Shown one piece after another: positions 16,176 through 53,438 of a stretch of DNA of 64,000 nucleotides. The position numbers and the translations under genes were made by a program. Below the pieces are notes generated by a model. It saw only the letters and a program-made list of their open reading frames with translations, was not told the origin of the DNA and made no database searches. Position 1 is the first letter of the stretch. Each line of letters begins with the position of its first letter. The DNA comes from Macrostomum lignano (taxonomy: Eukaryota), in contig NIVC01000118.1 of the NCBI GenBank assembly GCA_002269645.1, positions 124,001 to 188,000 of the forward strand, read 5' to 3'.

Positions 16176-16936
16176 CCTATCTATAAATCTGAGTACCTGT
16201 AAACTGCTTATCTCTATCCGCTACATGTATATCATCTAATTAGCTCATAATTCTATAAATTTATAAAAACTTAAAACCAGTTTTGCATTAATATATCTAA
16301 TTCATATATAGTTGAGGCTATCAGTGCCCAGTCTGCACTTGCACTTGTACATGTGAGGGAGTAAAAATGTACAGGTACACTGGCATGAGTCTAGCACCGC
16401 TATAGTCCAATCTAAGTGCGCAGCTACTCATCAATGACCAGTCAGAGTGAGACAGGGCTATAGCTCTTATCTATTAATGGCCATCAGCTAAAACTATAGC
16501 CATCAAATTGCAATGAAATATCTGAACAGCCGATTGAGTCATTGAGTCAGCCGATCAATAATTCATAATTCCCAGTTGACAGCCAAACAATGCAACAGAA
16601 GCAAGCGGGCTGAAGTTAAGGCCAAATTTATTCCACTTTTTATGCTTTTTTGTAGAAATTCGCGAGAACTGAGGAAAAACTTCGTGTTGAGGTTTTTAGA
16701 AACTTCCTCTGCATTCGATAATTGGTTTCATGGTTTCACAATTCTAATTCAAAGCAAGCATTGGTTGGTGCAATGGCAACTTTCCAAGGACTGCCATTTT
16801 CAATCGGTTATGTACATCCTGGATTTGAAAACTGTCAGACCGAAACACCATTCATTAGCATGATTGTCTGGCCTAGAAATCAGGGCTTGTCAGTGCTAAA
16901 GCTTTTAGGGGATGGCACCAAATTGTAATAGTCAGA

Positions 16937-17283
16937 GATGGCGCCGAAAGATAATCGTCAGGAATGGCGCCAAAATATAATCATCAGGGATGGCGCCAAA
17001 ATATAATAGTCAGGAATGGCGCCAAATTATAATCGTCAGGAGTGGCGCCAAATTATAATCGTCAGGAATGGCGCCAAATTATAATCATCAGGAATGGCGC
17101 CAAATTATAATCGTCAGGAGTGGCGCCAAATTATAATCGTCAGGAATGGCGCCAAATTATAATCATCAGGAATGGCGCCAAATTATAATCGTCAGGAATG
17201 GCGCCAAATTATAATTATCAGGAATGGCGCCAAATTAAAATCAGGAATGGCGCCAAATTATAATCATTAGGAATGGCGCCAAA
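16937..17283. repeat. ~26-bp minisatellite (caggaatggcgccaaattataatcgt)
   Basis: About 13-14 units, each with a GGCGCCAAA core. Confidence 0.93.
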
Positions 17284-17859
17284 AATACAGTAGTCAGCGC
17301 AGGCGCTAAAATCAAGCCCGCCGGGCGCAAATGGTTCCGAATTCCAATCCAGGTCTAGTAGTAGTCCATGGCCTCAGTCGTCCATGGCTTGTTAAAAATT
17401 TATCACTGATGATTATAAAATCGGCAAAGTCGCTGATGACTGGACTCTGACGGCTATTAGAGCCTCCGGGTGTCCCCAGGGCCTTGAAATTGCTTTCTAC
17501 TCGATCAGTGGCTGAGTGGCCACTGCAGGCAGGCGGAGGCGCATTGAGGGAATTTCCCAGAAAAAAACAGTTTACACAATAAAATTCCAATTCGCGACTG
17601 TCGCCGCCTTTTAAATTGACTTTTCGATGCATTGCGACGCCGTCAACGAGCGAAATTGGGAAAAAAACTAAATTCCCAAATCGACAATTGTCTGCATCAA
17701 TTTTTACTGGAAACTGAGCCATGTACATCAGTGTATATAGTATCGTAAATGTACAAATCGACGTGGCTTTTACCGCAAAAAATTGAATATAAAAGCGGTG
17801 CCAAAATTAGGTCGGAAACGCCGTAAATTGAGTGAAGAGAGGCACTAATATTTACTGTC

Positions 17860-18430
17860 AAAAGAGGCGCCAGTATTGAGTCAAAGGAGGAGCCAACCAA
17901 TATGAGTCAAAACAGGCGCCAGAATTTAGTCAAAAGAGGCGCCAATATTGAGTAAAATGAAGCGCCGATATTGAATCAAAAGAGGCGCCAATATGAGTCA
18001 AGTGGCGCCAATATTGAGACAAAAGAGGCGCCAATATTGTGTCAAAAGTGGCGCCAATATTGGGTCAAAATAGCCCCAATATTGAGTCAAAAAAGGCACC
18101 AATATGGAGTCAAAATAGGCGCCAATGTTGAGTCAAAAAGGCACCAATATTGAGTCAAAAGATGCGCCAATATTGAGTCAAAAGAGGTGCCAATATTGAG
18201 TCAAAAGAGGCGCCAATATTGAGTCAAGAAGGCACCAACATGGAGTCAAAAGAGGCGCCAGAGTTTAGTCAAAAAGTCCCCAGTATCAAGTTAAAAGAGA
18301 GGCCAATATTGAGTCAGAAGAGGCGCCAGAGTTTAGTCAAAAAGGCCCCAGTATCAAGTCAAGAAGGCACCAATATTGAGTCAAAAGAGGCGCCAGTATT
18401 GAGTCGAAAGAGACGCCAATATTGAGTCGA
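17860..18430. repeat. ~23-bp degenerate minisatellite (gtcaaaagaggcgccaatattga)
   Basis: More than 20 degenerate units are visible. Confidence 0.9.
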
Positions 18431-18568
18431 GTCGCCAATATTGAGTCAGAAGCTGAGCCCAAAGTCAAGTCTCAAATTCGCAGTTTTATCAGTAAACTGT
18501 CTATCACTGAACTTCGCTCACAGAGCGCCCTCAAGCAGCTGCCGACAGCAAGAAACTTCGCGGCCGCA

Positions 18569-20577
18569 ATGAGCAGCCGATTTACAGGCTGTTGGTCGAC
18601 TTCGCCGCCCAAAATTCGCCTCTTTCTGCTGCTCCTGATGATGTTTGGATTCTTTGCCGGAACAGCTCAGGCTATGTGGGTGCAGAAGTACGAGCGGCTG
18701 GCCTACTCGATTCCCGAGCCGCAAGGTCAGAAATTTTACAAAATTTGTTGTGCGTGACTGACAGAGCAGCAAAATGTTTATCGTGCATGCATTAACTTTT
18801 AATTTTTAGGGAGCCGTAGCTATAAGGGGCGCCAATATTTAGTGTCTCGGTTGGTGTCCTTGTCTGTGAGATTGCTGATTTGTTGATTTATTTGCTGACT
18901 CTTAGTTGGCGCCCCAGTCTCTTAGTTGGCGCCCCAGTCTCTTAGTTGGCGCCACTGTCTCTTAGTTGGCGCCACTGTCTCTTAGTTGGCGCCACTGTCT
19001 CTTAGTTGGCGCCCCAGTCTCTTAGTTGGCGCCCTAGTCTCTTAGTTGGCGCCCTAGTCTCTTAGTTGGCGCCCCAGTCTCTTAGTTGGCGCCCCAGTCT
19101 CTTAGTTGGCGCCACTGTCTCTTAGTTGGCGCCACTGTCTCTTAGTTGGCGCCATTTTCTCTTAGTTGGCGCCCTAGTCTCTTAGTTGGCGCCACCGTCT
19201 CTTAGTTGGCGCCACTGTCTCTTAGTTGGCGCCATTGTCTCTTAGTTGGCGCCACTATCTCTTGGTTGGCGCCCCAGTCTCTTAGTTGGCGCCATTGTCT
19301 CTTAGTTGGCGCCCTAGTCTCTTAGTTGGCGCCACCGTCTCTTAGTTGGCGCCCCAGTCTTTTAGTTGGCGCCCCTGTCTCTTGGTTGGCGCCACTTTCT
19401 CTTAGTTGGCGCCCAGTTGTCTCATGATTGGCGCCACTTTCTCTTAGTTGGCGCCCAGTTGTCTCATGATTGGCGCCCAGTTGTCTCATGATTGGCGCCT
19501 AGTTGTCTCATGGTTGGCGCCCAGTTGTCTCATGGTTGGCGCCTAGTTGTCTCATGGTTGGCGCCCAGTTGTCTCATGGTTAGCGCCCGTCTATTGGTTG
19601 GCTCTGAACGTATGTAGTGCTGTCATAAAGTTTTTCACTTTTTCCTTTATGATCCTTCATGTCACAGACCTACAGCCGCGGGGGGCTACATGCCGTATCT
19701 CGAATTTAGTTTTTGCCTCGGGGTCAATAAACCCGACATAACGAGCCCCTGTTCACTAGACAACTTGATCAGCATTTAGTGCACTGTGCAAATAAACTAT
19801 TAATTGCCTCAACTGATGGAGCCGTGGAAAGTTTTGTCAATCATCTCAACAAGCAGCCGGTGCAATATTTTTTTACTTAATTGGCTAAGCAAAAATGTTT
19901 CATTCTAGGTGGCTGGCAATGTCCTTTTGGTTGCTATGCCATTGAAACTGGAACTGGGTGCTTGTGTCGGTGTGGAGAATTGCTGACTGGGGAATTGCTG
20001 GCTGAGGAAGAAGTGACTGGGGAATTGCTGGCTGAGGAAGAAGTGACTGGGGAATTGCTGGCTGAGGAAGAAGTGACTGGGGAATTTCTGGCTGAGGAAG
20101 AACTGACTGGGGAATTGCTGGCTGAGGAAGAAGTGACTGGGGAATTTCTGGCTGAGGAAGAACTGACTGGGGAATTGCTGGCTAGGAAGAATTGACTGGG
20201 GAATTGCTGGCTGAGGAAGAAGTGACAGGGGAATTGCTGGCTGAGGAAGAATTGACTGGGGAATTGCTGGCTGGGGAATTGCTGGCTGAGGAAGAAGTGA
20301 CAGGGGATTGCACTTGTGTAGATCAATAAATGCGTGCTAAACTGACTAAATAATGTTAAATTTTACAGCAGTCCACCGCCGCTCTCAAACAGCTGCACCA
20401 GTCGCCAGCAGAGGCGAGGTCATATCCTACTTTCCCTGCTCCTACGGCGGCATCCCATATCCGGTTTCCTGCGGCTCCGGCGCCGGGCCAAGAGTGTTCC
20501 GTTCTAAGAAAGGATTTCTAGTCTGCGTGTGCCTCTGCTCAGCTGAGGCCGCCGGGCCCAACTGCCTGCCTGACTGA
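18569..20577 (+). CDS. Uncharacterised small secreted Cys-rich protein, 121 aa in the two-exon model (18569-18725, 20369-20577); possible extra exon from 19909
   Basis: ATG, hydrophobic signal peptide IRLFLLLLMMFGFFAGTAQA, phase-1 donor caag|gtcaga, phase-1 acceptor ttttacag|ca, dibasic HRR, 6-Cys C-terminal domain, TGA at 20575-20577 and AATAAA at ~20670. Confidence 0.7.
18899..19590 (-). repeat. 20-bp minisatellite (gtctcttagttggcgcccca), reverse-complement relative of the 6012 and 50668 arrays; drifts to a 23-bp unit at the right end
   Basis: Reverse complement ggcgccaactaagagactgg aligns with ggcgcccaccaagagacagg. Confidence 0.93.
19976..20306. repeat. 30-bp minisatellite (gaattgctggctgaggaagaagtgactggg)
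   Basis: About 10 units; one unit near 20183 lacks a base. Confidence 0.93.
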
Positions 20578-20737
20578 CTGTCGGCTAATATAACACTTTA
20601 TTAACTTTTAATCCAGTACCTGACCGTTCTATCAATAATTAGAAATTACTTGAAGCTTAAGGCATCGAAATAAATATTGATTCCCTCTCCGCTATTTAGC
20701 CTGCGTTGTGTCTTAGTGAATTTTGTGTTAAAATATA

Positions 20738-21286
20738 CCATAAATGGGAGATTAATATGTCTGCTCAGAATGCCAAAAATGGGAGATGAATATGTCTGCT
20801 CAGAATGCCATAAATGGGAGATGAATATGTCTGCTTAGAATGCCATAAATGGGAGATTAATATGTCTGCTCAGAATGCCAAAAATGGGAGATTAATATGT
20901 CTGCTCAGAATGCCAAAAATGGGAGATTAATATGTCTGCTCAGAATACCATAAATGGGAGATTAATATGTCTGCTTAGAATGCCATAAATGGGAGATTAA
21001 TATGTCTGCTCAGAATACCATAAATGGGAGATGAATATGTCTGCTCAGAATGCCATAAATGGGAGATTAATATGTCTGCTTAGAATGCCATAAATGGGAG
21101 ATTAATATGTCTGCTCAGAATGCCATAAATGGGAGATTAATATGTCTGCTTAGAATGCCATAAATGGGAGATTAATATGTCTGCTCAGAATGCCATAAAT
21201 GGGAGATTAATATGTCTGCTCAGAATGCCATAAATGGGAGATTAATATGTCTGCTCAGAATGCCATAAATGGGAGATTAATATGCC
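20738..21286. repeat. 35-bp minisatellite (cataaatgggagattaatatgtctgctcagaatgc)
   Basis: Period of 35 measured between successive atgggag motifs (20744 and 20779). Confidence 0.95.
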
Positions 21287-21985
21287 TGTTTTGAAGTTGA
21301 AGACGAACTGACAAATGAAAAATAAGTTTGAAACTTTACAAATGTTTAGGGCATTAAGATATTCATAGCAAATAAATTTGGTGCATTTCAATTCACATTG
21401 GTTGTTGGGACGCTAATTCAACTTTGAAATAAATTTATTTTACTTAGCAAATGCAAATTAAAGTTAAAAAACAGATTACATGGCAATGGGTACTATTAGA
21501 AAAACTAAAATGTTTTTGGAATGGATTTAAACTTGCTGGTTAAATTTTGATAGGTAATAAAACTTGTGCGCCACAGTTAATGCATACACAGAAACGCATA
21601 TTACTACTAGTGGCTAGGGGACGAGTAGTATAGTCTGCGTTAAGAAGACGATGTCAATAAAAAACTAAAAAAACACGATGAAGAATGTTGTTTTAATGCA
21701 AAAATATTGTAATTAAACATACCATAGCACAGCTTCTCCCCTATGGTTTTGTTTACAAAATAAGCTTTCGTAAAAAATCAAGCTCACGATGCGAGTTCAC
21801 CTAAGATCAATGGAAACTTTGCAGTTTCCTAGTAACTATTTGAAGGCTTTTAATTATTTAAGTTTCTTATTGTAAGCAGATTAAAGTGCTCAACTTAGCT
21901 AAAGATAGATTTAAATAGCATAGATAAATCAGTACAACAAACAAAAGGACGGCATAAAAGAGATGACAAGTCAAGAAGCGGTCAG

Positions 21986-27637: not shown

Positions 27638-30600
27638 TCACAACTCGTCTCTCTGCACCAGCACTTGATCCGCAGGCTTCGGCTGCCCTCCGCCGCTGGG
27701 ATCCGTCAGCTCCGCAGCCTTCCCAGTCCAATCGTTGAATGCCAACAGGGCCGCATTTCGTCCAGAAATGGCCGACATCTCTATAGCGGAGGCTGCCAAC
27801 TCGATGGGGCTGGTGTGGTACAGCCCGTCAGCCAGTACAAAGCTGGCATTGATCGACAGTCCCCGACGATAAAGCGGATAAGCCAGCCAGCTCACACTGT
27901 GGGTAAACTCAACATTAGTAAACAGTTGATTAACCTGCTCAGCAGTGAGTACTCGCTGTGAGAACACTTTATAAACATTGTCGGATGGATTTTTATCAAC
28001 ATCGTGTTGATAGCCGATGCTGCTAAAGTCCAGCGGCGATGCAGGCGTGCCCGTGAGCACGCTGTACTCAGATTGGCGACTTTTTAGGCCCAGCCAGTCG
28101 TGATTGAGCCGGCCTTTGACAAATGTTGCGACCGTGGTCTGGTAGTCGACTCGGGGAACTTTAACGTCTTTTATCTGAATAGGGGGTTATGAGAAGGCTC
28201 ATTGATCAGGATAATAGCCCTTCGGCCACATCTTCCCGCAAACGACGCTGGTCAAGCGCGCCAATACTGTGCGCAGACAAGCACTCATAGACACGCTCAC
28301 TCAGGGTGCACACAGCAGACTTGACTTTCTAATCGTCAGGTACGTGCATTCTCTGCGTCTTGGGGGCTGACCCTCATGGGATTCACAATTGATCACAAGA
28401 GGGATCACAATGGATCACAAGTAGATTCACAATGGATTACAAGTGGATTCACAAGAATTAAGAGGATTCACAAGAATTAAGAGGATTCACAAGAATTAAG
28501 AGGATTCACAAGAATTAAGAGGATTCACAAGAATTAAGAGGATTCACAAGAATTAAGAGGATTCACAAGAATTAAGAGGATTCACAAGAATTAAGAGGAT
28601 TCACAAGAATTAAGAGGATTCACAATGGATCACAAGTGGATTCACAATGGATCACAAGAGGATTCACAAGAATTAAGAGGATTCACAAGAGTTAAAAGGA
28701 TTCACAAGAATTAAGAAGATTCACAATGGATCACAAGTGGATTCACAATGGATCACAAGTGGATTCACAATGACACACAAGAGGATTCACAAGATTTAAG
28801 AGGATTCACAAGAATTAAGAAGATTCACAATGGATCACAAGAGGATTCACAATGGATCACAAGAATTAAGAGGATTCACAAGAATTAAGAAGATTCACAA
28901 TGGATCACAAGAGGATTCACAATGGATCACAAGACGATTCACAAGAATTAAGAGGATTCACAAGAATTAAGAAGATTCACAATGGATCACAAGAGGATTC
29001 ACAATGAATCACAAGAGGGTTCACAATGAATCACAAGAGGGTTCACAATGAATCACAATGAATCACGAGAGGATTCACAATGGATCACAATGAATCACAA
29101 GAGGGTTCACAATGAATCACAAGAGGATTCACAATGGATCACAAGAGGGTTCACAATGAATCACAAGAGGATTCACAATGGATCACAAGAGGATTCACAA
29201 TGGACCACAAGAGGATTCACAATGGACCACAAGAGGATTCACAGTGAATCACAATGAATCACAAGAGGATTCACAATGGATTAAAGTGGATTCACAATGA
29301 ATCACAAGAGGATTCACAAAAATTAAGAGGATTGACAAGAATTAAGAAGATTCAAAATGGATCACATGAGGATTAAAAAAAAGAGGATTCACAATGGTTC
29401 ACAAGAGGATTCACAATGGTTCACAAGAGGATTCACAAGAATTAAGAGGATTCACAAGAATTAAGAAGATTCACAATGGATCACAAGAGGATTCACTATG
29501 GATCACAAGAGGATTCACAAGAATTAAGAGGATTCACAATGGTTCACAAGAGAATTCACAAGAATTAGGAGGACTCACAAGAATTAAGAAGATTCCCAAT
29601 GGATCACAGGAGGATTCACAATGGATCACAAGAGGATTCACAAGAATTAAGAGGATTCACAAGAATAAGGAGTATTCACAATGGATCACAAGAGGATTCA
29701 CAATGGATCACAAGAGGATTCACAGTGAATCACAATGAATCACAAGAGGATTCACAATGGATCACAAGAGGATTCACAAGAATTAAGAGGATTCACAATG
29801 GTTCACAAGAGGATTCACAAGAATTAGGAGGATTCACAAGAATTAAGAAGATTCACAATGGATCACAAGAGGATTCACAATGGATCACAAGAGGATTCAC
29901 AATGGATCACAAGAGGATTCACAATGGATCACAAGAGGATTCACAATGGATCACAAGAGGATTCACAGTGAATCAAAATGAATCACAAGAGAGTTCACAA
30001 TTAATCACAAGAGGATTCACAATGAATCACAGCATGATTCACATGTAATCTGATTTGAAAGTTATTAAAAGCTATAGCAACAAAGCATCCATTATAATAG
30101 GGAATAAAAGGGGTGCCGTAGCCCAGCGGTAGCGCAGCTGCTCTGGTGTGCCGCGACCCAGGCTCGATTCCAAGTGCAGCCACATTAATTTGGGGCTGAA
30201 TTGGAATTTCAGCTTGGCTCGCTTGTGCAATTAACGGCCTTGAGAGCCAACCCCCCAAGGCGCAGTGAAGTGTACATGCCTAACAATTGATAAAGTTAGG
30301 GCCGCTGTACACTCCTGTGTGAGTGTGTGCCTGCGTAACGTATCCGCGCGCTTGTATGCCTGCTCAGGGGAGTCGGCGGAATGGGCAGTAATGCCTCTCG
30401 CCGGTTGTGTGCCTATGTCGCTTAAAGTGCGCCAGGGTGCACACAACCCCCCTGCCTCTAATAATAAAAAAAAAATAGGGAATAAACTCATACAACTCTC
30501 GGAAAATTTTACCTCGATATTAAAGTGCTGACTCGGAGGCACAGTCAGGATCACTTGATCATATTGCTCAACCACTGTTGACCTGCTAGCATCCGTGCTG

Positions 30601-32447
30601 GTCACAGTCCAACCTTCGCGATCCTTAGCAATCTGGGTAACTCGACTATTGAGCAGCAGCCTGACCTTGCCAGACTCGGCTTCATCCGCTTGCTGAGGCT
30701 GAGCCAGTCTACTAAGCAGATTAGCCACAATCAGCCGGTTGCCGCCTCTGACCGACCAGAGACCGCCTTCGGCGCCAGCCAACGACACTGCGCCAACGAA
30801 GCCGTGAATGCTCACATTCTGACCGTAGTTGTTGCGCATTGCCCCAGCAACCAGTTCGTTGATGAACTCGGAGCTGAAGCCGCTGGACTCCAGCAGCTGG
30901 AGTGATTTAATTAAATATTTTTTTTACTTTTGATTCTGCGCCTTTGATCAAGCAGTGCTTGGGAATCTGCCCTTCATTTACCCCCTGTTCCTTAAATCTG
31001 CCCTTCATTTACCTCCTGTTCCTTGAATCTGCCCTTCATCTACCCGCTGTTCCTTGAATCTGCCCTTCATCTACCCTCTGTGTCCTTGAATCTGCCCTTC
31101 ATTTACCCCCTGTTCCTTGAATCTGCCCTTCATTTACCCACTGTTCCTTGAATCTGCCCTTCATTTACCCACTGTTCCTTGAATCTGCCCTTCATCTACC
31201 CGCTGTTCCTTGAATCTGCCCTTCATCTACCCTCTGTGTCCTTGAATCTGCCCTTCATTTACCCCCTGTTCCTTGAATCTGCCCTTCATTTACCCCCTGT
31301 TCCTTGAATCTGCCCTTCATTTACCCCCTGTTCCTTGAATCTGCCCTTCATTTACCCCCTGTTCCTTGAATCTGCCCTTCATCTACCGGATTCTACCCCC
31401 TGTTCCTTGAATCTACCCTTCATCTACCCCCTGTTCCTTGAATCTGCCCTTCATCTACTCCCTGTTCCTTGAGAATCTGCCCTTCATCTTCCCTCTGTTC
31501 CTTGAGAATCTGCCCTTCATCTACCCCTGTTCCTTGAGAATCTGCCCTTCATCTACCCTCTGTTCCTTGAGAATCAGCCCTTCATCTACCCCCTGTTCCT
31601 TGAGAATCTGCCCTTCATCTAACCCTGTTCCTTGAGAATCTGCCCTTCATCTAACGCCCGTTTCTTGAAGCTGCCCTTCATTTACCCTCTGCTCGTTGAA
31701 TCTGCCTCTCCACTCCCTATAATAATTTCCCAGTGTAAAAACTGCAAGTTAAAAGCCAGACCCCACCTTCTCAATGGTCTCAGTCGCCATGGCCGGGAAG
31801 CGGTCAGACATGGCAGACAGAAGACCCAGCACATTGGTGTAAGCTTGCCCAGCATTCTGCCTAGTATAGACGCGGCCGAAATCTTCCAGCATGCCGGATA
31901 CAAACTTTCTTAGCTGAACAAAAGCAGCCAAGCCGTACCTATGCAAGAGCTGCACCATCTTAACCAGGTACCAATCGCTAGTGTCCAGCACAGTGTCTCG
32001 GCCATTGAACACAGCTAATCTAGTCTCTTCTCCGTGATACAGTCTGCTCAGTCCAAGCACATCTGCGAAATGTCGCATATACAAATTCTTATCGTGTATA
32101 ATTGATCCGCCAGATTCGAACTTGCGACCATCGAAATTAGCTACACCAAGACGGCCGCCAACTAATGTAGCAGAGGACTCGTCCGTGACAATGTCCATTC
32201 TACAGTTGGAGCCGAATTTGTCTCTAAGGAAATAGGCGGCACTGGCCGCGGCTACTCCGCTACCAATGATGGCAATGCGGGGACCCGGCCGCTTCAAGTC
32301 TCTGCTTTTATCTTCACTCTGAGCTGCCTGAACCGACGCTGATGTGCCAGAGGAGAGCAGCGCCAAACTCGGCAGCAATAGGCAGGAGGTCAAGGTGAGC
32401 TGATGAGGCAGTCTCAGTGCCCAGTGTTTTGCAGACAGGCAAAGCAT
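27638..32447 (-). CDS. PCYOX1: Prenylcysteine oxidase 1-like FAD flavoprotein, 533 aa; exons 32447-31767, 30896-30513, 28174-27638
   Basis: Signal/anchor peptide, Rossmann motif RIAIIGSGVAAASAAYFL, VGGRL, FESGGSIIHDKNLYM, MRNNYGQ...GFVGAVSLAGAEGGLWSVRGGN, WLAYP, IELAASAIEMSAISGRNAALL and C-terminal ER-retention signal RDEL. Both introns are phase 0 GT-AG and the frame is intact. Confidence 0.95.
28257..28378 (-). mobile_element. Diverged antisense fragment of the same SINE body
   Basis: gacacgctcactcagggtgcacacagcagacttgactttctaatcgtcaggtacgtgcattctctgcgtcttgggggctgaccctca aligns with the reverse complement of ~30240-30330. Confidence 0.65.
28378..30045. repeat. Composite minisatellite of interspersed 19-bp (gaggattcacaagaattaa) and 22-bp (gaggattcacaatggatcacaa) units, PCYOX1 intron 2
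   Basis: Both unit types are visible and alternate in blocks. Confidence 0.96.
30109..30473 (+). mobile_element. Full-length tRNA-derived SINE with A-rich tail and 13-bp TSD, antisense in PCYOX1 intron 2
   Basis: A box TAGCCCAGCGG (30119-30129), B box GGCTCGATTCC (30161-30171), tail aataataaaaaaaa, TSD aatagggaataaa at 30096-30108 and 30474-30486. Confidence 0.9.
30962..31690. repeat. 31-33-bp minisatellite (gaatctgcccttcatttaccccctgttcctt[ga]) in PCYOX1 intron 1
   Basis: About 22 units; the unit gains ga in the right-hand part. Confidence 0.95.
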
Positions 32448-38243: not shown

Positions 38244-41200
38244 TTAACAGTTGAGTGGCCTTGAGATATCGCTGAACACAGTCGCTGGTTTGTAGTTGTG
38301 AGGCATTAGTAGGCACAGGTGAAAGCTGCGATACTTGACGCGGTCACTGATGCTTGCCTGTCCCGCGGTGTCGCTGATCATCCGCATTGCGGCGTTGGCT
38401 CGGCCGTGGCTTTGATCCGGCCGCACCACCAAGCCGAAGGTCGGCCGTGGTACTCCAACAAGCAGCTGCAGTTTTCGCCGATTGCTAGCCGTCTGGGCGG
38501 TCTCAGCCGATGACTGCGCTATCGCTAGAGTCGACGGCGAGTTGACGGTGGCACCGCAAGTGGCCGCGTCCGAGGCGGCCCCAGAGCCGCAACCAGGCGG
38601 CAAGACTTCGATGCTGCACTGGCAGCACTTTTCAATCTTTCTTAAGCAGTTGGTCTTCATCAGCGATCTGCTCTTCTCCGTCACCGGGGCGCGCGCTTCA
38701 AAAGAAAGTACGCGCAAATCTTTGACGTACTGATAAAACTTTTTATAGTCGTTAAGCGGCACGCAAATAGTCAAGTTAAGCGGGCAGGTCATTGCGCCCT
38801 CGGGGTAGGCATCACGATTGAGCACGCGATGGATTTGAGTTAACTCTAGGATCAGGCAACCTTGAGGATGAGCGCGCAGCAGGTCAGAGTACTGTCTCGA
38901 GCGGATATACAGGAGACGCACACGCAGCAGGTTAAGCATTGGCACAGGACCACAATTAGCCAACCGATTGATCAGGCGTTGAAGATCTGAACGCAGTCGC
39001 GCAGACAGCACGCTGGAATCCTGCGCCAGCTGGTAGAGATACAACCTAGCGAGCACCGAATCCACCAGGCTTAGCGTCGGCTCCCGGTACTCGGCCGCCG
39101 TCTGGGTTTCTACAAGGTACGCGGTTCGCTCTTCTGATGGTACCATCAGCTTGGCAACTTCAATTAGATCCCAAGTGGTCTCCGACTCGCTGTATAAACG
39201 CTTCACACCGTTGCTCTCGGTTCGAAGTTTCTGCGCGCTATCGAACTTCTCTTTAATGGCCGTCACCCGGCGCTCCAAGCTACGATTCGCGCAGCCGCTA
39301 CAGGCCCGACGCCACCACTCGAACAGAGCGTTAAATGCCGTCTTGAACTCCTGGTTGTCAACCCGTTCATTGGGTCGAAAGCTAGATAGTAGACCTTCGA
39401 GGCGCTCCATGAATTGAATTGAAAAAGCCTCTTCCGGTTCGATCAACGAGTTGACAGTAGACTCAATGGCCGCTTCCTGGTTGTTTTCAGCAACTTCGGT
39501 TGTATGCCGGGGATTGAAGCGTTCATCGAAGCGTTCGGTGCCTTCATTGTCCGAGACAGGCTCCATGGCAGCCTGTGGTTCCAATGAAAAGTCTGGCTCC
39601 AAAAAGGAAGCGGGTGGTGGTGGCAACCGTGAAGGCGTGTCACCTCGAACGACGTCTCTGACGCATTCCTCATCGTCGCTATCCAACCCATCGGTAGCTG
39701 GCGTCGGGCTGGCTGGTCTCGGAATGTTATCGCCGCTGTTACTATTGCCGCATCCAGCGGACCCTACGCTGCCGGCCAGGCAGGTAAAACAGGCCAGCAT
39801 GTCGTCGAACAGGGTGACAACCGTCTTGCGTAGTGAGCCATCACCGCCTCCGTCGCTAGGGCTACATGCTACGAAGCCCATGACTGTTGTTGCCAGGCTC
39901 TGCATCCGATCGAGCACCAGTTGACGCCGACGTTCAACTGTCCGGGCGTAGCGACCGATCGCAGCGGTGAGGACCGCAGCTCGTCGAGCCGCATATTTAG
40001 AAACATTAATGAGGCGTCCCGAGCTACTTCCTCCGGCCGAAGAAGAACTGAGATCCCGGTCCACTTGCTCGGCGAATGTCATCAGCAGACTGGACAGTTC
40101 GGCGTCGTCAACTTCGGCGAGGGTGGCGTCCGTGTCCAGGAACAGGCGCATCTGCAGGTGGATCGAGCGCAAGTCGGCGAGACCCTGGCGCAGCAGCAGC
40201 TCCGAGTCGCTTGTCGACTGTGGATAAAGGAAACTTTTCGTTAATGATGCTTTTCTTTCCCATGTTTGTAATTAAAACAAGTCTACATGCAAAAATTGCA
40301 TGATTTTATGATTCAAGAGTGCAACATTCTTCTATATTAGCTGGTAAAAGCTTTGTGCTTAAAATAAAAGACACTCACAGACTGATTCCCAGCCAGCAGG
40401 TTAAACATTTCGAGCATCTCCGGCTGGCTGAATGGAAACGCCGTTAGAAATTGCAGCCGAAAAACTCTGTCGCCGAATTCGTAAACAAACGGATGCAACG
40501 ATTCAGTGATTGCTGCAGCATCTATGCATTGATTAGCCGGCTTCGCACAATTGCTTTGTCTCCGGGTTTGTTCTTCTGCTTTGGCTACTTGATCCAGCAT
40601 TGAACCAATTAGACAGCAGAGCTTATTTTCTTCGTCAAAGTCTTCTTCTGAGGCTGGGTGTGTCGATGTCGCTGGTGGCAGCGGTTTCTGCTGTTGCTGT
40701 TGCTGTTGTTGTTGTTTTTTAACTTGGCGTCGTTTCGTTGAGATTTGATCGTCGAGACAGCTGCTGTCACCATCGGCACTACTGAGTCGATCCTGTTCGT
40801 TGATAAGTTTATAGTTTATTTATTCAGTTTGATGGCAGCTTTGGGCACTACCAAGGCGACAATCAACTCCCACACAGAAAGAATCCTAAATGCACAGTCA
40901 CACCAACATACACAGGGAGTATAGCGGTCCTAACTTTCTAATTGTCGGGAATGCTCTGGAAGTTAAACCTACAAAGTATGAACCGTACGACAAGTCCCAG
41001 GACAATTTCTGTGCTCTTACAGTGTATTTCCCTGAGAATGGTGGTCTCATGGTGGTCGGGATTTGAGGATCAAGCTGAAGGACAGCTCTTCTCTCCTCTC
41101 GGGTTGTTATAAAAATGATCAGGGAAGGAGGCTTGGCAGATTTGTTCATGTACGTCAACTCTCGGCCCAATGCTGAGATTAACATGTCTGCCTCTCGCAC

Positions 41201-43029: not shown

Positions 43030-46000
43030 TCAGGACATGCTCTCTCTTGATGTCTCCTCAACAACGCTGAGACGTCGAGTAGAAGGTGATTTTGGCGATG
43101 TCGCTTCGAACGCGTCTTCCGTTTTCGCAACATCCGGTACGACAGCTGCTGCTACAGCATCCGTGTTGCTTTTATTCTTCGGGCCCGCCCCTTTCGCGTC
43201 CTTGCCCTTCTTTTTCTTCTTACCCTTTGTCTTCTCCTTTAGCATATAGCCCTTATTACGGGTGTAATAATCGGGAAATATGCGGAACATGTCGCAGCGA
43301 TTGTCGTTAACGTAGATTTCTGTACAGTTCTTCTTGTACAGGTCGCTGGCTATCTCTCGGGTGGTCAGCTCCTCAGCGACTGCGGGTTTCGTGTGTATGA
43401 GTATGAGTTACTAAAACAGGTATGTATGAGTATGAGTTACTAAAACAGGTATGTATGAGTATGAGTTACTAAAACAGGTATGGATGAGTATGAGTTACTA
43501 AAACAGGTATGTATGAGTATGAGTTACTAAAACAGGTATGTATGAGTATGAGTTACTAAAACAGGTATGTATGAGTATGAGTTACTAAAACAGGTATGTA
43601 TGAGTATGAGTTACTAAAACAGGTATGTATGAGTATGAGTTACTAAAACAGGTATGTATGAGTATGAGTTACTAAAACAGGTATGTATGAGTATGAGTTA
43701 CTAAAACAGGTATGTATGAGTATGAGTTACTAAAACAGGTGTGTACCAGGTATGAGTTACCAAAACAGGTGTGTACGAGTTAATCAAACAGGTGTGTACG
43801 AGTTAATCAAACAGGTGTGTACGAGTTAATCAAACAGGTGTGTTCGAGTTACCAAAACAGGTGTGTTCGAGTTACCAAAACAGGTGTGCACGAGTTACCC
43901 AAACAGGTGTGCACGAGTTACCAAAACAGGTGTGTTCGTGTTACCCAAACAGGTGTGCACGAGTTACCCAAACAGGTGTGCACGAGTTACCAAAACAGGT
44001 GTGTTCGAGTTACCCAAACAGGTGTGCACGAGTTACCCAAACAGGTGTGTTCGAGTTACCAAAACAGGTGTGCACGAGTTACCAAAACAGGTGTGCACGA
44101 GTTACCAAAACAGGTGTGTTCGAGTTACCCAAACAGGTATGTTCGAGTTACCAAAACAGGTGTGCACGAGTTACCCAAACAGGTGTGTTCGAGTTACCCA
44201 AACAGGTGTGTTCGAGTTACCAAAACAGGTGTGCACGAGTTACCCAAACAGGTGTGTTCGAGTTACCCAAACAGGTGTGTACGATTTATCCAAACAGGTG
44301 TGTTTGAGTACAAAAACAAGTGTGTAAGAGTGACAGACGCCAAAATTGGTCATTGATCAAAGCGCCGAAAAGCATGACTCACGATTCGGCACGCCCATAA
44401 TCTTGGCTTTGCCGGCTCGTTTGTCGTAATTGAAGCAGCCGATGGTGAATAAGAAGTCAGCTCGACGATCCAGACCGATCCGAGCGAACACCGGGTCAAT
44501 GATGTCTCTCACAGTGGCCCAAGGCCTCGCGTACACCGCGATGCAGAAGGACCAGATGTCTTGGAATGCGAACACGTACTTGTCATTGGGCTGCAGAGAA
44601 TGCGGGAGACAGTTGTTGATAAATTTGATTTTTTCTTGGTTCAACTGGTACTTTCTGAATGCGGTTCAGGCCTATGGACTTGCTAGGGTAGGATTTGTTC
44701 TGTAGATATGATACTTGTCAATAGACTTTACTAAATATGAGTAGCTAAGCATTTCTATGCATTCAAATCTATAAATCCCACTCAAACTGAGCAAATTTCA
44801 ACCGAATCTATAGATCAACTCCAAACCGAATCTGTAGATCAACACCCAACCGAATCTATAGATCAACCCCAAACCAAATCTATAGATCAAATCCCAACCG
44901 AATCTATACATCAAATCCCAACCGAATCTATGCATCAAATCCCAACTAAATCTATACATCAAATCCCAACCGAATCTATACATCACCTCCCAACCGAATC
45001 TATACATCAACTCCCAACCGAATCTATACATCAACTCCCAACCGAATCTATACATCAAATCCCAACCGAATCTATACATCAACTCCCAACCGAATCTATA
45101 CATTAACTCCCAACCGAATCTATAGATCAACCCTCAACCGAATCTATAGATCAACCCTCAACCGAATCTGTAGATCAACACCAAACCGAATCTATACATC
45201 AACTCCCAACCGAATCTATACATCAACTCCCAACCGAATCTATACATCAACTCCCAACCGAATCTATACATCAACTCCCAACCGAATCTATACATCAACT
45301 TCCAACCGAATCTATAGATCAACCCTCAACCGAATCTATAGATCAACCCTCAACCGAATCTGTAGATCAACACCAAACCGAATCTATACATCAACTCCCA
45401 ACCGAATCTATAGATCAAATCCCAACCGAATCTATACATCAAATCCCAACCGAAACTATAGATCAAATCCCAACCGAATCTATAGATCAAATCCCAACCG
45501 AAACTATCGATCAAATCCCAACCGAATCTATAGATCAAATCCCAACCGAATCTATAGATCAACCCCAACCAAATCTATAGATCAAATCCAAACAGACCTT
45601 CGGTACCGGTCCGGCGCCCTTTTTCCCAGTGAGTTTTTTCTGTTTCTTCCGATAAGCTAGATAATCGTTCCAGCGTTTCTCGGAATTCTCCTTCCTGAAC
45701 CGGACGGTGAAACGGATAAAGTCGGGATAGTGGGGCTCGGACTCTTCGCCCTTCTTTTCCTTCTTCTTGACGGCGTTATTACGATAGTCTTCAATTAGCT
45801 TCTTCATTTTCACTTGGTCGTTATAAGAGAAGCCATAGTCGACATTGCGCCAGCGATCGATAATTTTCTGAGTTGGGTGCTCGTGCGCTTTGATTAACAG
45901 AAAGTTGGTGTCCACTGTGCCTTTGTCCAGCTCGTTGAACTTCATGTTGAGCAGGGCGCGAAGGCGCCTGGCGTAAGCGAACGTTTTCTCGTAGTCGTCG

Positions 46001-48393
46001 ATCATTTTGCGGTCTGAAGTGGGGTCGGGATTGGCGCTCATTGGGACGGCGCTGGTTGGGATTGGCGCTCATTGGGACGGCGCTGGTTGGGTGGCGCTGG
46101 TTGGGACGGCGCTGGTTGGGTGGCGCTGGTTGGGGTGGCGCTGGTTGGGGTGGCGCTGGTTGGGGTGGCGCTGGTTGGGATTGGCGCTGGTTGGGGTGGC
46201 GCTGGTTGGGGTGGCGCTGGTTGGGATTGGCGCTGGTTGGGGTGGCGCTGGTTGGGGTGGCGCTGGTTGGGATTGGCGCTCATTGGGACGGCGCTGGCTG
46301 GGTGGCGCTGGTTGGGGTGGCGCTGGTTGGGATTGGCGCTGGTTGGGATTGGCGCTGGTTGGGATTGGCGCTGGTTGGGGTGGCGCTGGTTGGGATGAGC
46401 GCTGGTTGGGGTGGCGCTGGTTGGGATTGGCGCTGGTTGGGGTGGCGCTGGTTGGGATTGGCGCTCATTGGGACGGCGCTGGTTGGGTGGCGCTGGTTGG
46501 GGTGGCGCTGGTTGGGGTTGGCGCTCATTGGGACGGCGCTGGTTGGGATTGGCGCTCATTGGGACGGCGCTGGTTGGGTGGCGCTGGTTGGGACGGCGCT
46601 GGTTGGGTGGCGCTGGTTGGGGTGGCGCTGGTTGGGGTGGCGCTGGTTGGGGTGGCGCTGGTTGGGATTGGCGCTCATTGGGACGGCGCTGGTTGGGTGG
46701 CGCTGGTTGGGGTGGCGCTGGTTGGGGTGGCGCTGGTTGGGATTGGCGCTGGTTGGGGTGGCGCTGGTTGGGGTGGCGCTGGTTGGGATTGGCGCTGGTT
46801 GGGGTGGCGCTGGTTGGGGTGGCGCTGGTTGGGATTGGCGCTGGTTGGGGTGGCGCTGGTTGGGGTGGCGCTGGTTGGGATTGGCGCTGGTTGGGACGGA
46901 GCTGGCTGGGTGGCGCTGGTTGGGATTGGCGCTCATTGGGATTGGCGCTGGTTGGGGTGGCGCTGGTTGGGATTGGCGCTGGTTGGGGTGGCGCTGGTTG
47001 GGATGAGCGCTGGTTGGGGTGGCGCTGGTTGGGATTGGCGCTGATTGGGATTGGCGCTGGTTGGGGTGGCGCTGGTTGGGGTGGCGCTGGTTGGCAATAT
47101 AAGTCGCCAACTGATAGACCACAAGTATCGCTGACCACAAGTTAAGCTGAGTTAGCCGCGGTTAGTACGCTAGGATTAATTGGACCAATCGCTAGGTGAG
47201 ATGCAATAAGATTCACCCTACTGTGAGCAGCTCTGAAACACACTGTAGGCAGGTGCATCCAGCTCTTACCTTGATCTTCGAATATCTCGGGTTCTTCAAT
47301 GTATTCAGTGGACACTTTGCCTTCCTCCACCAGCTTGGATGTGTCGATAATCTCAGTTTGTCGAGACAGCGCGCTCTTCACCATGGCATCGGCGCCTGGA
47401 GCCGGGGGGGAGGCAGGGAACAATGTCATTAGTTACTGTCAGTAAAAATAATCGAATGCACTTAAGGGATAAATTAATCAGGGAAGTCTTCACTCACCCC
47501 TGGCGAGTGCGCTGGTATTCTCCAGACCTGTAATATTGCATTATAGTTTGAGCTGGTTAGTAATTACATATTTAAAGTTTGCTGCATTTCTACTAGTAGT
47601 AGTACACAACGTTCAAATAATCCGACGAAAATTTCGACCATAAAGTCCTAATTTCTATTTTTTCTTATTAAGACTTATAGTGCATCCATATAAACATCTA
47701 TTAGTCCGATTTTTAATTTACTGGTTGGTTCAAGCGACCCGTTGCACAGAGCAGCACTGAGCAGTTCAGCTTGAGTGACACCTGAGCACACACAAGCACG
47801 CCAATACTGTACACAAGCACGCACTCGTACACTCTAGGCGCTCTGGAGGTTGGCCCTCAATGACTGTGAGTCGCACCAGGGCGAGAGTCAGACGTCACTT
47901 CCTGTGCAACACCGCAGCACCAGCTGTTCGTGACAGAAGCATCATCCGCGCTGCCGGCGACTGGGATTCGGTCTAACTTGGTCTCACAGCGCAGATGCAC
48001 TATTTTATTGTTGCGCGCTGTTGCATCATTAAAAAACTCCCCAGCTCACTCACTGTTTATTTCGGTCAAATCCGAGACGATCTCGTAGTCGCCCGAGCTG
48101 CCGCTGCTGACGTCGCTGCGGTCGGCCGCCCACCTGCTGCCCCTCCGGCTGTTGTTGGTTTGCGTCGCGTCCGACGTTGAAGCATCGAATGCGACTCGAC
48201 GAGCGACTTTGCTTTTATGACTGGCTGGTAAAGTCGAGTCTATCCGAGTGACAGCTCGAGCAATCGAGCCGAACGTGGATGCGTCAGCGTCCGATTCGGC
48301 TTCCGGGCTGGGCGAGTTCATCCAAAGGCATCCGGAAACGCTTGAGCTCTTCGATGCAGCCGCTGCGGCACTGTGGCTGCGTTTTTGGAACAT
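43030..48393 (-). CDS. Uncharacterised ~497-aa Lys-rich protein with a possible Raf-type RBD/ubiquitin-like domain; exons 48393-48054, 47395-47270, 46013-45598, 44644-44383, 43379-43030
   Basis: Phases match across four GT-AG introns (total 1494 nt). IAVYARPWATVRDIIDPVFARIGL resembles RBD patterns; the domain call is tentative and the exon 4 acceptor could differ. Confidence 0.7.
43393..44310. repeat. Two-phase minisatellite: 29-bp unit (caggtatgtatgagtatgagttactaaaa) changing to 23-bp unit (caggtgtgcacgagttaccaaaa)
   Basis: Transition visible near 43740. Confidence 0.95.
44795..45590. repeat. 24-bp minisatellite (cccaaccgaatctatacatcaact), intronic
   Basis: About 33 units; gives the MYRFGWEL ORFs. 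Confidence 0.95.
46028..47095. repeat. ~15-bp minisatellite (ggcgctggttggggt / ggattggcgctcattgggac variants), intronic
   Basis: Tandem units are directly visible. Confidence 0.96.
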
Positions 48394-50667: not shown

Positions 50668-52125
50668 CAAGAGACAGGGGTGCCCACCAAGAGACAGGGG
50701 CACCCACCAAGGAGACAGGGGCGCTAACCAAGAGACAGGGGCGCCCACCAAGAGACAGGGGCGCTAACCAAAGAGACAGGGCCGCCCACCAAGAAACAGG
50801 GGCGCTAACCAAAGAGACAGGGGCGCCAACCAAGAGACAGGGGCGCGCACCAAGAGACAGGGCCGCCCACCAAGACACAGGGGCGCTCACCAAGACACAG
50901 GGCCGCCCACCAAGAGACAGGGGCGCCCACCAAGACACAGTGGCGCGCACCAAGAGACAGGGGCGCGCACCAAGAGACAGGGGCGCGCACCAAGAGACAG
51001 GGCCGCCCACCAAGACACAGGGGCGCTCACCAAGAGACAGGGCCGCCCACCAAGAGACAGGGCGCCCACCAAGACACAGTGGCGCGCACCAAGAGACAGG
51101 GGCGCGCACCAAGAGACAGGGCCGCTAACCAAAAAGACAGGGGCGCCAACCAAAGAGACAGGGGCGCTAAGCAAGGAGACAGGGGCGCGCACCAAGAGAC
51201 AGGGGCGCGCACCAAGAGACAGGGCCGCCCACCAAGACACAGGGGCGCTAACCAAAGAGACAGGGGCGCCAACCAAGAGACAGGGGCGCGCACCAAGAGA
51301 CAGGGGCGCTAACCAAAGAGACAGGGGCGCCAACCAAGAGACAGGGGCGCGCACCAAGAGACAGGGCCGCCCACCAAGACACAGGGGCGCTAACCAAAGA
51401 GACAGGGGCGCCAACCAAGAGACAGGGGCGCGCACCAAGAGACAGGGCCGCCCACCAAGACACAGGGGCGCTCACCAAGAGACAGGGGCGCGCACCAAGA
51501 GACAGGGGCGCTAACCAAAGAGACAGGGGCGCCAACCAAGAGACAGGGGCGCGCACCAAGAGACAGGGCCGCCCACCAAGACACAGGGGCGCTAACCAAA
51601 GAGACAGGGGCGCCAACCAAGAGACAGGGGCGCGCACCAAGAGACAGGGCCGCCCACCAAGACACAGGGGCGCTCACCAAGAGACAGGGGCGCCCACCAA
51701 GAGACAGGGGCGCCAACCAAAGAGACAGGGGCGCGCACCAAGAGACAGGGGCGCGCACCAAGAGACAGGGGCGCCAACCAAAGAGACAGGGGCGCGCACC
51801 AAGAGACAGGGCCGCCCACCAAGAAACAGGGGCGCTAACCAAAGAGACAGGGGCGCCAACCAAAGAGACAGGGGCGCGCACCAAGAGACAGGGCCGCCCA
51901 CCAAGACACAGGGGCGCTCACCAAGAGACTGGGGCGCCCACCAAGAGACAGGGGCGCCAACCAAAGAGACAGGGGCGCGCACCAAGAGACAGGGGCGCGC
52001 ACCAAGAGACAGGGGCGCCAACCAAAGAGACAGGGGCGCCCACCAAGAGACAGGGGCGCCCACCAAGAGACAGGGGCGCGCACCAAGAGACAGGGGCGCT
52101 AACCAAAGAGACAGGGGCGCCCACC
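50668..52125 (+). repeat. 20-21-bp minisatellite of the caccaagagacaggggcgcc family, more diverged than the 6012 array
   Basis: Same consensus with gcgcacc, gccgccc and gctaacc variants. Confidence 0.95.
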
Positions 52126-52764
52126 TGGAGACCGGGGGTCAACCAAGACACGCCCTCCAATTAAGAGTCTTGCGTCAAGACGCCACTGGACCAGACTGCG
52201 ATAGCTTCCCACAAGTCCTAACAACACGAGTCTTTTTTGGACCGGTAGATCGAGTTGGCACTCTTCCAGATTCTATGCATTTCGTTCTCCCTGATCTGAC
52301 AGCTCAAGCGCTTTCAATCGCAAACTACGAGGCGCGGCATTGCAACAGGCGCCAAGAATAACCCCCCCCCGCCTCCATGGTCGGAATACTGGCGCAAGCG
52401 CAAGAAACCAGTAGCTACTGCGCAGGTTGGGAATTTGTAAAATTGTCAGCCAATAAGAATAATTATAGAATATGGAACTATGCGAGTTTCTGCGTATGAG
52501 TGGAGCAGCAGTCTATAATATAAGGCTTTCGATCTTGCTCTGCGCTGCAGACAGAAGATTTACAGATTTAGTGGAAATTTAAAACCAACGACGACTAACG
52601 AAAATTGGTTAACTATTTTAAGCAATCGGCTACTAAATAAGGTGAGCACAGCTGGAGTACTGATGATACTTTATAAATCATTTATGGTTTGTGGAACTGT
52701 GTTTTAATTCTGGAGTCCTAATAAATTTGCTAAAAAATCTTTCGAGATTAAAATGGAGCTTATG

Positions 52765-52848
<84 letters not shown>

Positions 52849-52869
52849 GCAGACAGACAGACAGACTGG

Positions 52870-52931
<62 letters not shown>

Positions 52932-52965
52932 GCAGACAGACAGACAGACAGACAGACAGACACTA

Positions 52966-53037
<72 letters not shown>

Positions 53038-53061
53038 TGGCAGACAGACAGACAGACAGAA

Positions 53062-53097
<36 letters not shown>

Positions 53098-53115
53098 GGA
53101 CAGACAGACAGACAC

Positions 53116-53197
<82 letters not shown>

Positions 53198-53241
53198 TGG
53201 CAGACAGACAGACAGACAGACACTAAGACAGACAGACTGGC

Positions 53242-53274
<33 letters not shown>

Positions 53275-53277
53275 CTA

Positions 53278-53337
<60 letters not shown>

Positions 53338-53373
53338 TGGCAGACAGACAGACAGACAGACAGACAGACACTA

Positions 53374-53438
<65 letters not shown>

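Follow-up and report, generated by a model that had tools for sequence, protein, structure and literature searches.

A catalogued yet uncharacterised gene for a predicted secreted six-cysteine peptide, and its small family, in Macrostomum lignano

The gene and its predicted precursor

A two-exon gene occupies positions 18569-20577 of a 64,000-nucleotide (nt) stretch of the Macrostomum lignano genome (GenBank assembly GCA_002269645.1, contig NIVC01000118.1, positions 124,001 to 188,000 of the forward strand; the whole of this stretch is referred to below as the window). The exons, of 157 and 209 nt, add up to 366 nt, meet at a phase-1 junction between GT..AG splice sites, and specify a 121-residue protein. 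An initial annotation, made from the letters alone, had joined two open reading frame (ORF) fragments at the phase-matched splice sites 18725/20369, and in this it was right: the spliced product agrees letter for letter with the sequence that it quoted, the cysteines are spaced C-x10-C-x17-C-x-C-x-C-x8-C as it had stated, and the basic segment RVFRSKK is present. What does not stand is its description of the gene as unrecognised and hidden: the identical 121-residue model is public as UniProt A0A1I8HQH8, and the near-identical A0A1I8HGG9 and A0A1I8G223 accompany it. The gene is a catalogued yet uncharacterised prediction; nothing hidden has been uncovered.

The gene model is better than chance, because an independent database entry gives exactly the same protein, because a diverged paralogue carries an intron of the same phase at the same place, and because the ratio of nonsynonymous to synonymous substitution (dN/dS) between the two is below 1. 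That this is a real coding gene is held with high confidence. If the transcript were left unspliced, the frame of exon 1 would run into a stop at 18755-18757, and the frame of exon 2 opens only at 20350. Use of the second AG of the tandem CAGCAG acceptor would drop Ala53 and yield ...PQVHRR, as in the 120-residue A0A1I8HGG9; one-residue isoforms, or differences of this kind between copies of the gene, are possible products of such an acceptor. Upstream of the start codon, the segment TTTTATCAG at 18484-18492, 77 nt 5' of the ATG, resembles a 3' splice acceptor and might serve either for spliced-leader trans-splicing, to which 38.8% of M. lignano genes are subject (PMC5730564), or for the removal of an intron in the 5' untranslated region.

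The layout proposed by the initial annotation, a signal peptide, a pro-region, a dibasic site and a six-cysteine mature peptide, is strengthened by the paralogue, which keeps the dibasic site, the six cysteines and the intron phase. The signal peptide is predicted by a rule-based assessment (n-region charge +3, a hydrophobic core of 14 residues, and Ala at -3 and -1 in A-Q-A; the Kyte-Doolittle maximum in an 11-residue window is 2.80, from residue 18). It is followed by a basic pro-piece of 22 residues and a mature peptide of 64 residues (isoelectric point (pI) 8.3, net charge +1.4), which bears RVFRSKK as a basic hairpin tip and, at its C-terminal end, a loop of the form C-x-C-x5-G-x2-C (Table 1). 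The signal peptide would target the precursor to the endoplasmic reticulum and be cut off after Ala35, and three disulfides would form in the C-terminal six-cysteine domain. A subtilisin-like proprotein convertase would then cut after the dibasic site (RR57, or KR in the paralogue), removing a short and freely varying propeptide, and a peptide of ~6.5 kDa would leave the cell, folded as a small domain of beta-sheet and with a last loop like the C-terminal one of EGF-like domains. Secretion is very probable; cleavage at the dibasic site is moderately so; and for the composite claim, that of a real, secreted and convertase-processed six-cysteine peptide, the balance is just on the favourable side of even.

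Table 1. Features of the six-cysteine peptide gene and other elements of the window (positions are those of the window)
Feature	Position	Strand	Basis or remark
Exon 1	18569-18725	+	ATG at 18569; donor CAAG/GTCAGA
Predicted signal peptide, codons 1-35	18569-18673	+	MSSRFTGCWSTSPPKIR / LFLLLLMMFGFFAG / TAQA; rule-based; UniProt name 'Secreted protein' agrees
Pro-region, first part	18674-18725	+	MWVQKYERLAYSIPEPQ + first base of codon 53; sequence
Intron, phase 1, GT..AG, 1643 nt	18726-20368	+	sequence; phase-1 intron at equivalent place in paralogue
Minisatellite in intron, 20-mer x33	18895-19565	-	
Minisatellite in intron, 30-mer x10	19984-20278 (19973-20293 as a 15/30-mer array)		
Tandem CAGCAG (NAGNAG) acceptor	20366-20371	+	sequence
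Exon 2	20369-20577	+	acceptor TTTTACAG/CAG; stop TGA 20575-20577
Pro-region end, (A)VHRR	20369-20382	+	dibasic R56-R57 at 20377-20382
Predicted mature peptide, 64 residues	20383-20574	+	six Cys at mature positions 19, 30, 48, 50, 52, 61
AATAAA polyadenylation signal	20669-20674	+	92 nt past stop, just ahead of minisatellite 20738-21288; read from sequence
Minisatellites with GGCGCC(AA) core, units otherwise different	16912-17283, 17827-18452	+	
	18895-19565	-	
	6009-8074, 50668-52148		
Lone copy of the core	18828-18835		just past exon 1
(GACA)169 microsatellite	52765-53438		
Kelch-repeat gene	2461-4264	-	
Perforin-like gene	8932-11124	-	ORF 10228-11124 with MACPF domain (E 2.5e-21); ORFs at 8932-10142 probably same gene
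Prenylcysteine oxidase/lyase gene	27638-32447	-	split by minisatellite-filled introns
642-residue ORF	38244-40172	-	no Pfam match; may be exon of an uncharacterised gene
160-residue ORF, Lys-rich	45559-46041	-	no Pfam match; may be exon of an uncharacterised gene
Multi-cadherin-domain gene	54778-58052	+	

Catalogued copies, a diverged paralogue and constraint on the mature domain

A0A1I8HQH8, which is named 'Secreted protein' and assigned to Macrostomum lignano, is the same protein as the product of the window, identical at 121/121 residues (protein search, expectation value (E) 3.3e-74); it is an uncharacterised automatic prediction. Its cluster at 90% identity has 3 members: the other two are A0A1I8HGG9 (120 residues, 98% identical), from which the Ala at the junction is missing, and A0A1I8G223 (117 residues, 94% identical), which has suffered an in-frame loss of VASR. 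All three copies are intact and differ in length only in frame. Among them the 57 residues of the signal and pro segments have accumulated 8 substitutions, against 1 in the cysteine domain plus an in-frame deletion of 4 residues in its N-terminal tail. We take the UniProt entries to be the output of an automated prediction pipeline, and no DNA is on record for any of the three. Neither these accessions nor Mlig026996, the paralogue described below, is mentioned in any searchable paper. Mlig026996 also has no entry in the supplements of PMC7336406, PMC5816591 and PMC5946080, a weak negative, one of the sets containing no 'Mlig0269' identifier of any kind and probably following another scheme.

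An exhaustive phmmer (HMMER) search over 1.84 billion representative proteins returned five matches at E up to 0.001, comprising the protein's own cluster, two true relatives and two spurious matches. The relatives are the Mlig026996 protein (E 2.7e-18) and A0A1I8HUJ2 (E 3.8e-17), both 71% identical to the window protein over residues 68-118. Two repetitive proteins (E 2.6e-4 and 8e-4) were set aside: their match is limited to the hydrophobic signal region. The search found no relative outside M. lignano, in libraries from which other Macrostomum species are probably absent. Within the window itself, tblastn and blastn with the protein and the exons found no paralogue (best off-target E 0.57). 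Searching a word index of proteins with the mature-domain alignment gave no candidates, a result of little weight, since an earlier search of this type missed the paralogue that phmmer found.

A single diverged relative came to light, the paralogue BOX15_Mlig026996 g1/g2 (GenBank PAA47331, PAA56703 and PAA49465, each a partial 'hypothetical protein'), with the precursor MGKPNLTTALIVLGAWALLLTPLLVAG / ESPIEDEVLEKR / GSKDVITYFPC...CVCLCPPGKTGPNCGSS. Its exons were placed on three loci, L001-L003, taken from the same assembly, where the GenBank models are short and have three exons. Like the window gene, it specifies a predicted signal peptide, a short propeptide, a dibasic site and a six-cysteine domain with equal cysteine spacing, and it has a phase-1 intron just before the dibasic site. 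This last intron of the paralogue is bounded by GT..AG and interrupts the codon immediately ahead of KR (TTG G/gt...ag/AG AAG CGC); the phase-1 intron of the window gene interrupts the codon three residues ahead of RR (CAA G/gt..ag/CA GTC CAC CGC CGC). In a five-sequence alignment the mature domains are 65-71% identical, with all six cysteines kept and 36 columns invariant. The basic motif between the variable pro-region and the conserved mature part is also retained (RR57 aligns with KR, and R57 is invariant), and the hairpin tip stays basic in both paralogue groups. The signal and pro sequences of the two genes, in contrast, share no similarity and are not alignable: the paralogue's signal ends in V-A-G, and its pro-piece is of 12 residues and acidic. 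The paralogue's mature peptide has 56 residues, a pI of 9.1 and a net charge of +4.7, its N-terminal tail being 8 residues shorter than that of the window gene and its last loop reading PPGKT in place of SAEAA. It differs further in having its start codon on an extra 5' exon, with an intron right after the ATG, and in its surroundings, which consist of a dynein heavy chain and an amino-acid permease and include no neighbour in common with the window.

Loci L001-L003 are homeologous copies, too alike for a strong test of constraint: their coding sequences have 2 differences in 289 aligned nt, both read as synonymous, and intron 2 differs by 2.7%. The annotation of the assembly is reported to come from genome-guided transcriptome assembly (PMC5730564), and for this reason the junction in the paralogue that is equivalent to 18725/20369 has indirect transcript support; that support is limited to the paralogue. 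The second database relative, A0A1I8HUJ2, is an 857-residue model labelled 'EGF-like domain-containing protein', in which an Arg-rich N-terminal part is joined to exons 2-3 of Mlig026996. No Pfam domain is found in its first ~760 residues, and it looks like an artefactual fused prediction, because the GenBank models of Mlig026996 are short. It contains a Cys/His motif reminiscent of the C terminus of a retrotransposon ORF2. As far as the searched sequences go, this is a small family, so far of M. lignano only, made up of two diverged paralogue groups.

The window gene and the paralogue are far enough apart for the codons of their mature domains to be compared. Over the whole aligned domain (53 codons), dS is 0.87 and dN 0.28, for a dN/dS of 0.32 (Fisher p 0.002); over the core, EVISYFPC..CVCLC (41 codons), dS is 0.68 and dN 0.18, for a dN/dS of 0.26 (Fisher p 0.001). 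Many of the differences fall at third positions and leave the residue unaltered. Because dN/dS is 0.26-0.32 at p ~0.001-0.002, the mature domain is judged to be under purifying selection, as part of a constrained coding gene. Taken with the shared gene structure and the placing of substitutions among the near-identical copies, this all but excludes a chance pair of ORFs, and it indicates that the mature domain is the part of the precursor that counts.

Minisatellites and neighbouring genes

According to PMC5730564, simple and tandem repeats account for 15% of the M. lignano genome, much of whose assembly is duplicated, and the very high minisatellite load of the window is in keeping with this. 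Several minisatellites whose units are otherwise different have a GGCGCC(AA) core in common, and the window contains 68 occurrences of GGCGCCAA where 2.2 would be expected. Three of the arrays with this core flank the six-cysteine peptide gene or sit within it, in both orientations. The shared core suggests either that the arrays arose from one source or that the motif promotes array formation. A 20-mer, ACAGGGGCGCCCACCAAGAG, recurs in two same-strand arrays ~44 kb apart, the one beginning at 6009 (x103) and the one beginning at 50668 (x73). The window also contains the microsatellite, the four genes with recognisable domains or families, and the two long ORFs that close Table 1.

The cysteine framework and candidate functions

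In the AlphaFold2 model of the mature domain (predicted local distance difference test score, pLDDT, 76.6; predicted template modelling score, pTM, 0.60), residues 12-18, 34-40 and 46-53 of the mature peptide form the three strands of an antiparallel sheet. In this model RVFRSKK would form the tip of a hairpin and C-x-C-x-C would lie on the last strand, ahead of the C-terminal loop. The model of the full precursor has a helix at 14-46, and its signal and pro parts are of low confidence. Foldseek found no match in the PDB to either model: the best hits have E 1.1-1.5 and TM scores of at most 0.31, are mostly immunoglobulin-like noise, and include no structure of the EGF fold, the hallmark of which is a set of 1-3, 2-4 and 5-6 disulfides. 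At E up to 10, Pfam offers no family for the window protein, the paralogue or the 857-residue model, and a phmmer search with the mature peptide against PDB sequences found no match. Two familiar cysteine-rich frameworks were tried and rejected, the inhibitor cystine knot (C-C-CC-C-C) and CS-alpha/beta (C..CxxxC..C..CxC); the domain has no CC pair and no CxxxC, and no Pfam or PDB match.

The remark of the initial annotation that it did not recognise the CxCxC framework holds up to the extent that there is no Pfam family and no significant match in the PDB by sequence or fold; it has to be qualified where the last loop is concerned. That loop (CLCSAEAAGPNC in the window gene, CLCPPGKTGPNC in the paralogue) has the C-x-C-x5-G-x2-C signature of EGF domains, and UniProt calls the fused paralogue model 'EGF-like'. 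The PROSITE EGF pattern is a permissive one, and the label on A0A1I8HUJ2 is probably explained by this permissive signature. When a profile of the mature domain is run against the PDB, the best matches, which are not significant, are the EGF-repeat constructs 5l0t_B (E 0.066) and 5ky5_B (E 0.11), with vCLCsaeaaGPNC aligned to TCLCPPGFTGPNC. An hhalign comparison of the profile with seven EGF domains (human EGF, TGF-alpha, EGF1 of factors VII, IX and X, and Notch1 EGF11 and EGF12) gives a probability of 35% and P 4e-4 over 14 columns, a score that 0/200 column shuffles reach; for the global alignment the probability is 0.6%. In the canonical EGF register the loops C1-C2 and C2-C3 are short and the C3-C4 hairpin has ~8-14 residues; the spacing here is x10, x17, x1, x1, x8. 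A canonical EGF domain is rejected on these grounds: there is no Pfam match, the cysteine register is off, and the similarity is only local. The resemblance to EGF-like domains (Pfam PF00008 clan; PROSITE EGF_1) consists in the C-x-C-x5-G-x2-C loop, the modelled beta-hairpin ending in C-x-C, and the general character of a small, disulfide-rich domain that is predicted to be secreted; the difference lies in the non-canonical register, the local extent of the similarity, and the lack of a Pfam or structural match. On present comparisons no curated family takes in the domain; the arrangement of its cysteines is unclassified, and what it has in common with EGF is confined to one loop.

What such a peptide might do is approached here through the way in which its precursor has evolved. 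Among toxins and antimicrobial peptides, the signal and pro segments are usually kept and the mature peptide is variable; among precursors of hormones and growth factors it is the reverse, and reproductive proteins usually evolve fast. A conserved signal and pro-region joined to a hypervariable mature peptide is not what these paralogues display: their pattern is the opposite. The initial annotation had named toxins, antimicrobial peptides and signalling peptides as sharing the layout, and with the mature part conserved and the prepro part divergent, the signalling option gains and the toxin and antimicrobial options become the less likely ones. Since purifying selection appears to act on the mature domain, and the signal and pro sequences are too different to be aligned, the reading that is tentatively favoured, at a probability somewhat short of even, is that of an extracellular ligand of the signalling type, similar to a hormone or a growth factor, and not that of a fast-evolving weapon or a reproductive protein. 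The precursor shares with those of convertase-processed, disulfide-rich peptide hormones a predicted signal peptide, followed by a spacer propeptide and a dibasic site, and the combination of a conserved mature part with a variable precursor part; it differs from them in being unrelated in sequence to the named hormone families, in lacking an amidation signal, and in that its processing is a predicted one.

Several points weigh against reading the product as a processed and secreted ligand. The putative cleavage site in the window copy, VHRR/S, is without an Arg at P4, and a monobasic SR/G, which A0A1I8G223 lacks, lies ten residues downstream of RR57. The signal peptide rests on rules, and the cut after RR we infer from the sequence only. 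The 90%-identity cluster holds no protein from the transcriptome-based GenBank annotation, perhaps because expression of the gene is weak or because that annotation overlooked it. The ligand reading is built on one evolutionary pattern between two paralogue groups, and the net charges of the two mature peptides would also suit a mildly cationic defence peptide. This last point leads to the exocrine glands, whose products would act outside the animal or in its mate, as antimicrobial or defensive peptides, as seminal-fluid proteins of the prostate, or as components of adhesive, rhabdite or eggshell secretions. An orphan that is small, cysteine-rich, predicted to be secreted and confined to a single lineage has the profile typical of such secretions; both mature peptides are basic and the hairpin tip is conserved as such; and M. 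lignano has 76 prostate-limited transcripts, at least 64 of them predicted to be secretory (PMC5977470). The low dN/dS of the mature domain, next to prepro segments that have diverged wholly, runs counter to what is usual in toxin and antimicrobial families, and the window copy carries a net charge of only +1.4. The absence of the accessions and of Mlig026996 from the searchable M. lignano papers and supplements tells weakly in the same direction. A gland product is the main rival reading, less probable than not and behind the ligand.

A true, if very divergent, member of the EGF-like family, serving as a soluble EGF-type ligand for a flatworm EGF receptor, is improbable. The loop C-L-C-SAEAA-G-PN-C fits the signature, its counterpart in the paralogue comes near the EGF repeat in the PDB, the hhalign score exceeds that of 200/200 shuffles, and the predicted hairpin ending in C-x-C, with a closed loop to follow, would recall EGF topology; candidate soluble ligands of the single-EGF type, without a transmembrane region, are on record in other animals (PMC4914847). 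All of this is offset by the silence of the Pfam EGF models for window protein and paralogue alike, by the shortness of the aligned stretch and the insignificance of the PDB match, by the absence of any EGF structure from the Foldseek results, and by the permissiveness of the PROSITE pattern. The canonical C1-C6 register is, moreover, impossible, given a cysteine-free stretch between mature positions 30 and 48 and an additional C-x-C. A flatworm-specific soluble ligand derived from EGF, in which the first EGF disulfide had been relocated onto the hairpin strand to create C-x-C-x-C, is a similarly long shot. Least probable is that no independent functional gene exists here, the model being a chance or decaying pair of ORFs called by a predictor, or exons of a larger gene. 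The presumed automated origin of the UniProt entries and the 857-residue model for the paralogue can be cited in its favour, as can a frame that is open upstream of the ATG from 18380 (63 codons). But what that frame translates is a minisatellite, in which no in-frame ATG occurs from the upstream stop to 18569, and the 857-residue model has no Pfam domain and is at odds with the short GenBank models of the paralogue. The ORF, canonical splice sites and AATAAA are intact, as are the three catalogued copies; dN/dS against the paralogue is significantly below 1 at a dS of 0.87, and the intron phase is conserved.

The practical result of this analysis is a correction: the splicing proposed at the outset is right and the gene is real, yet the protein was already in the public databases. 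What has lasting value is a small uncharacterised family of predicted secreted six-cysteine peptides, so far of M. lignano only, with a constrained mature domain and a conserved dibasic site. M. lignano is tractable by RNA interference, in situ hybridisation and transgenesis, so the function of these peptides is cheaply testable. Were they gland products, they would be one more case among many such orphans. The EGF-derived reading, if true, would make them a new structural variant of the growth-factor fold, and a convertase-released hormone or growth factor in an animal capable of regeneration and amenable to transgenesis. If the tentatively favoured identification as signalling ligands is true, flatworm biology would gain a hormone or growth factor peculiar to one lineage.

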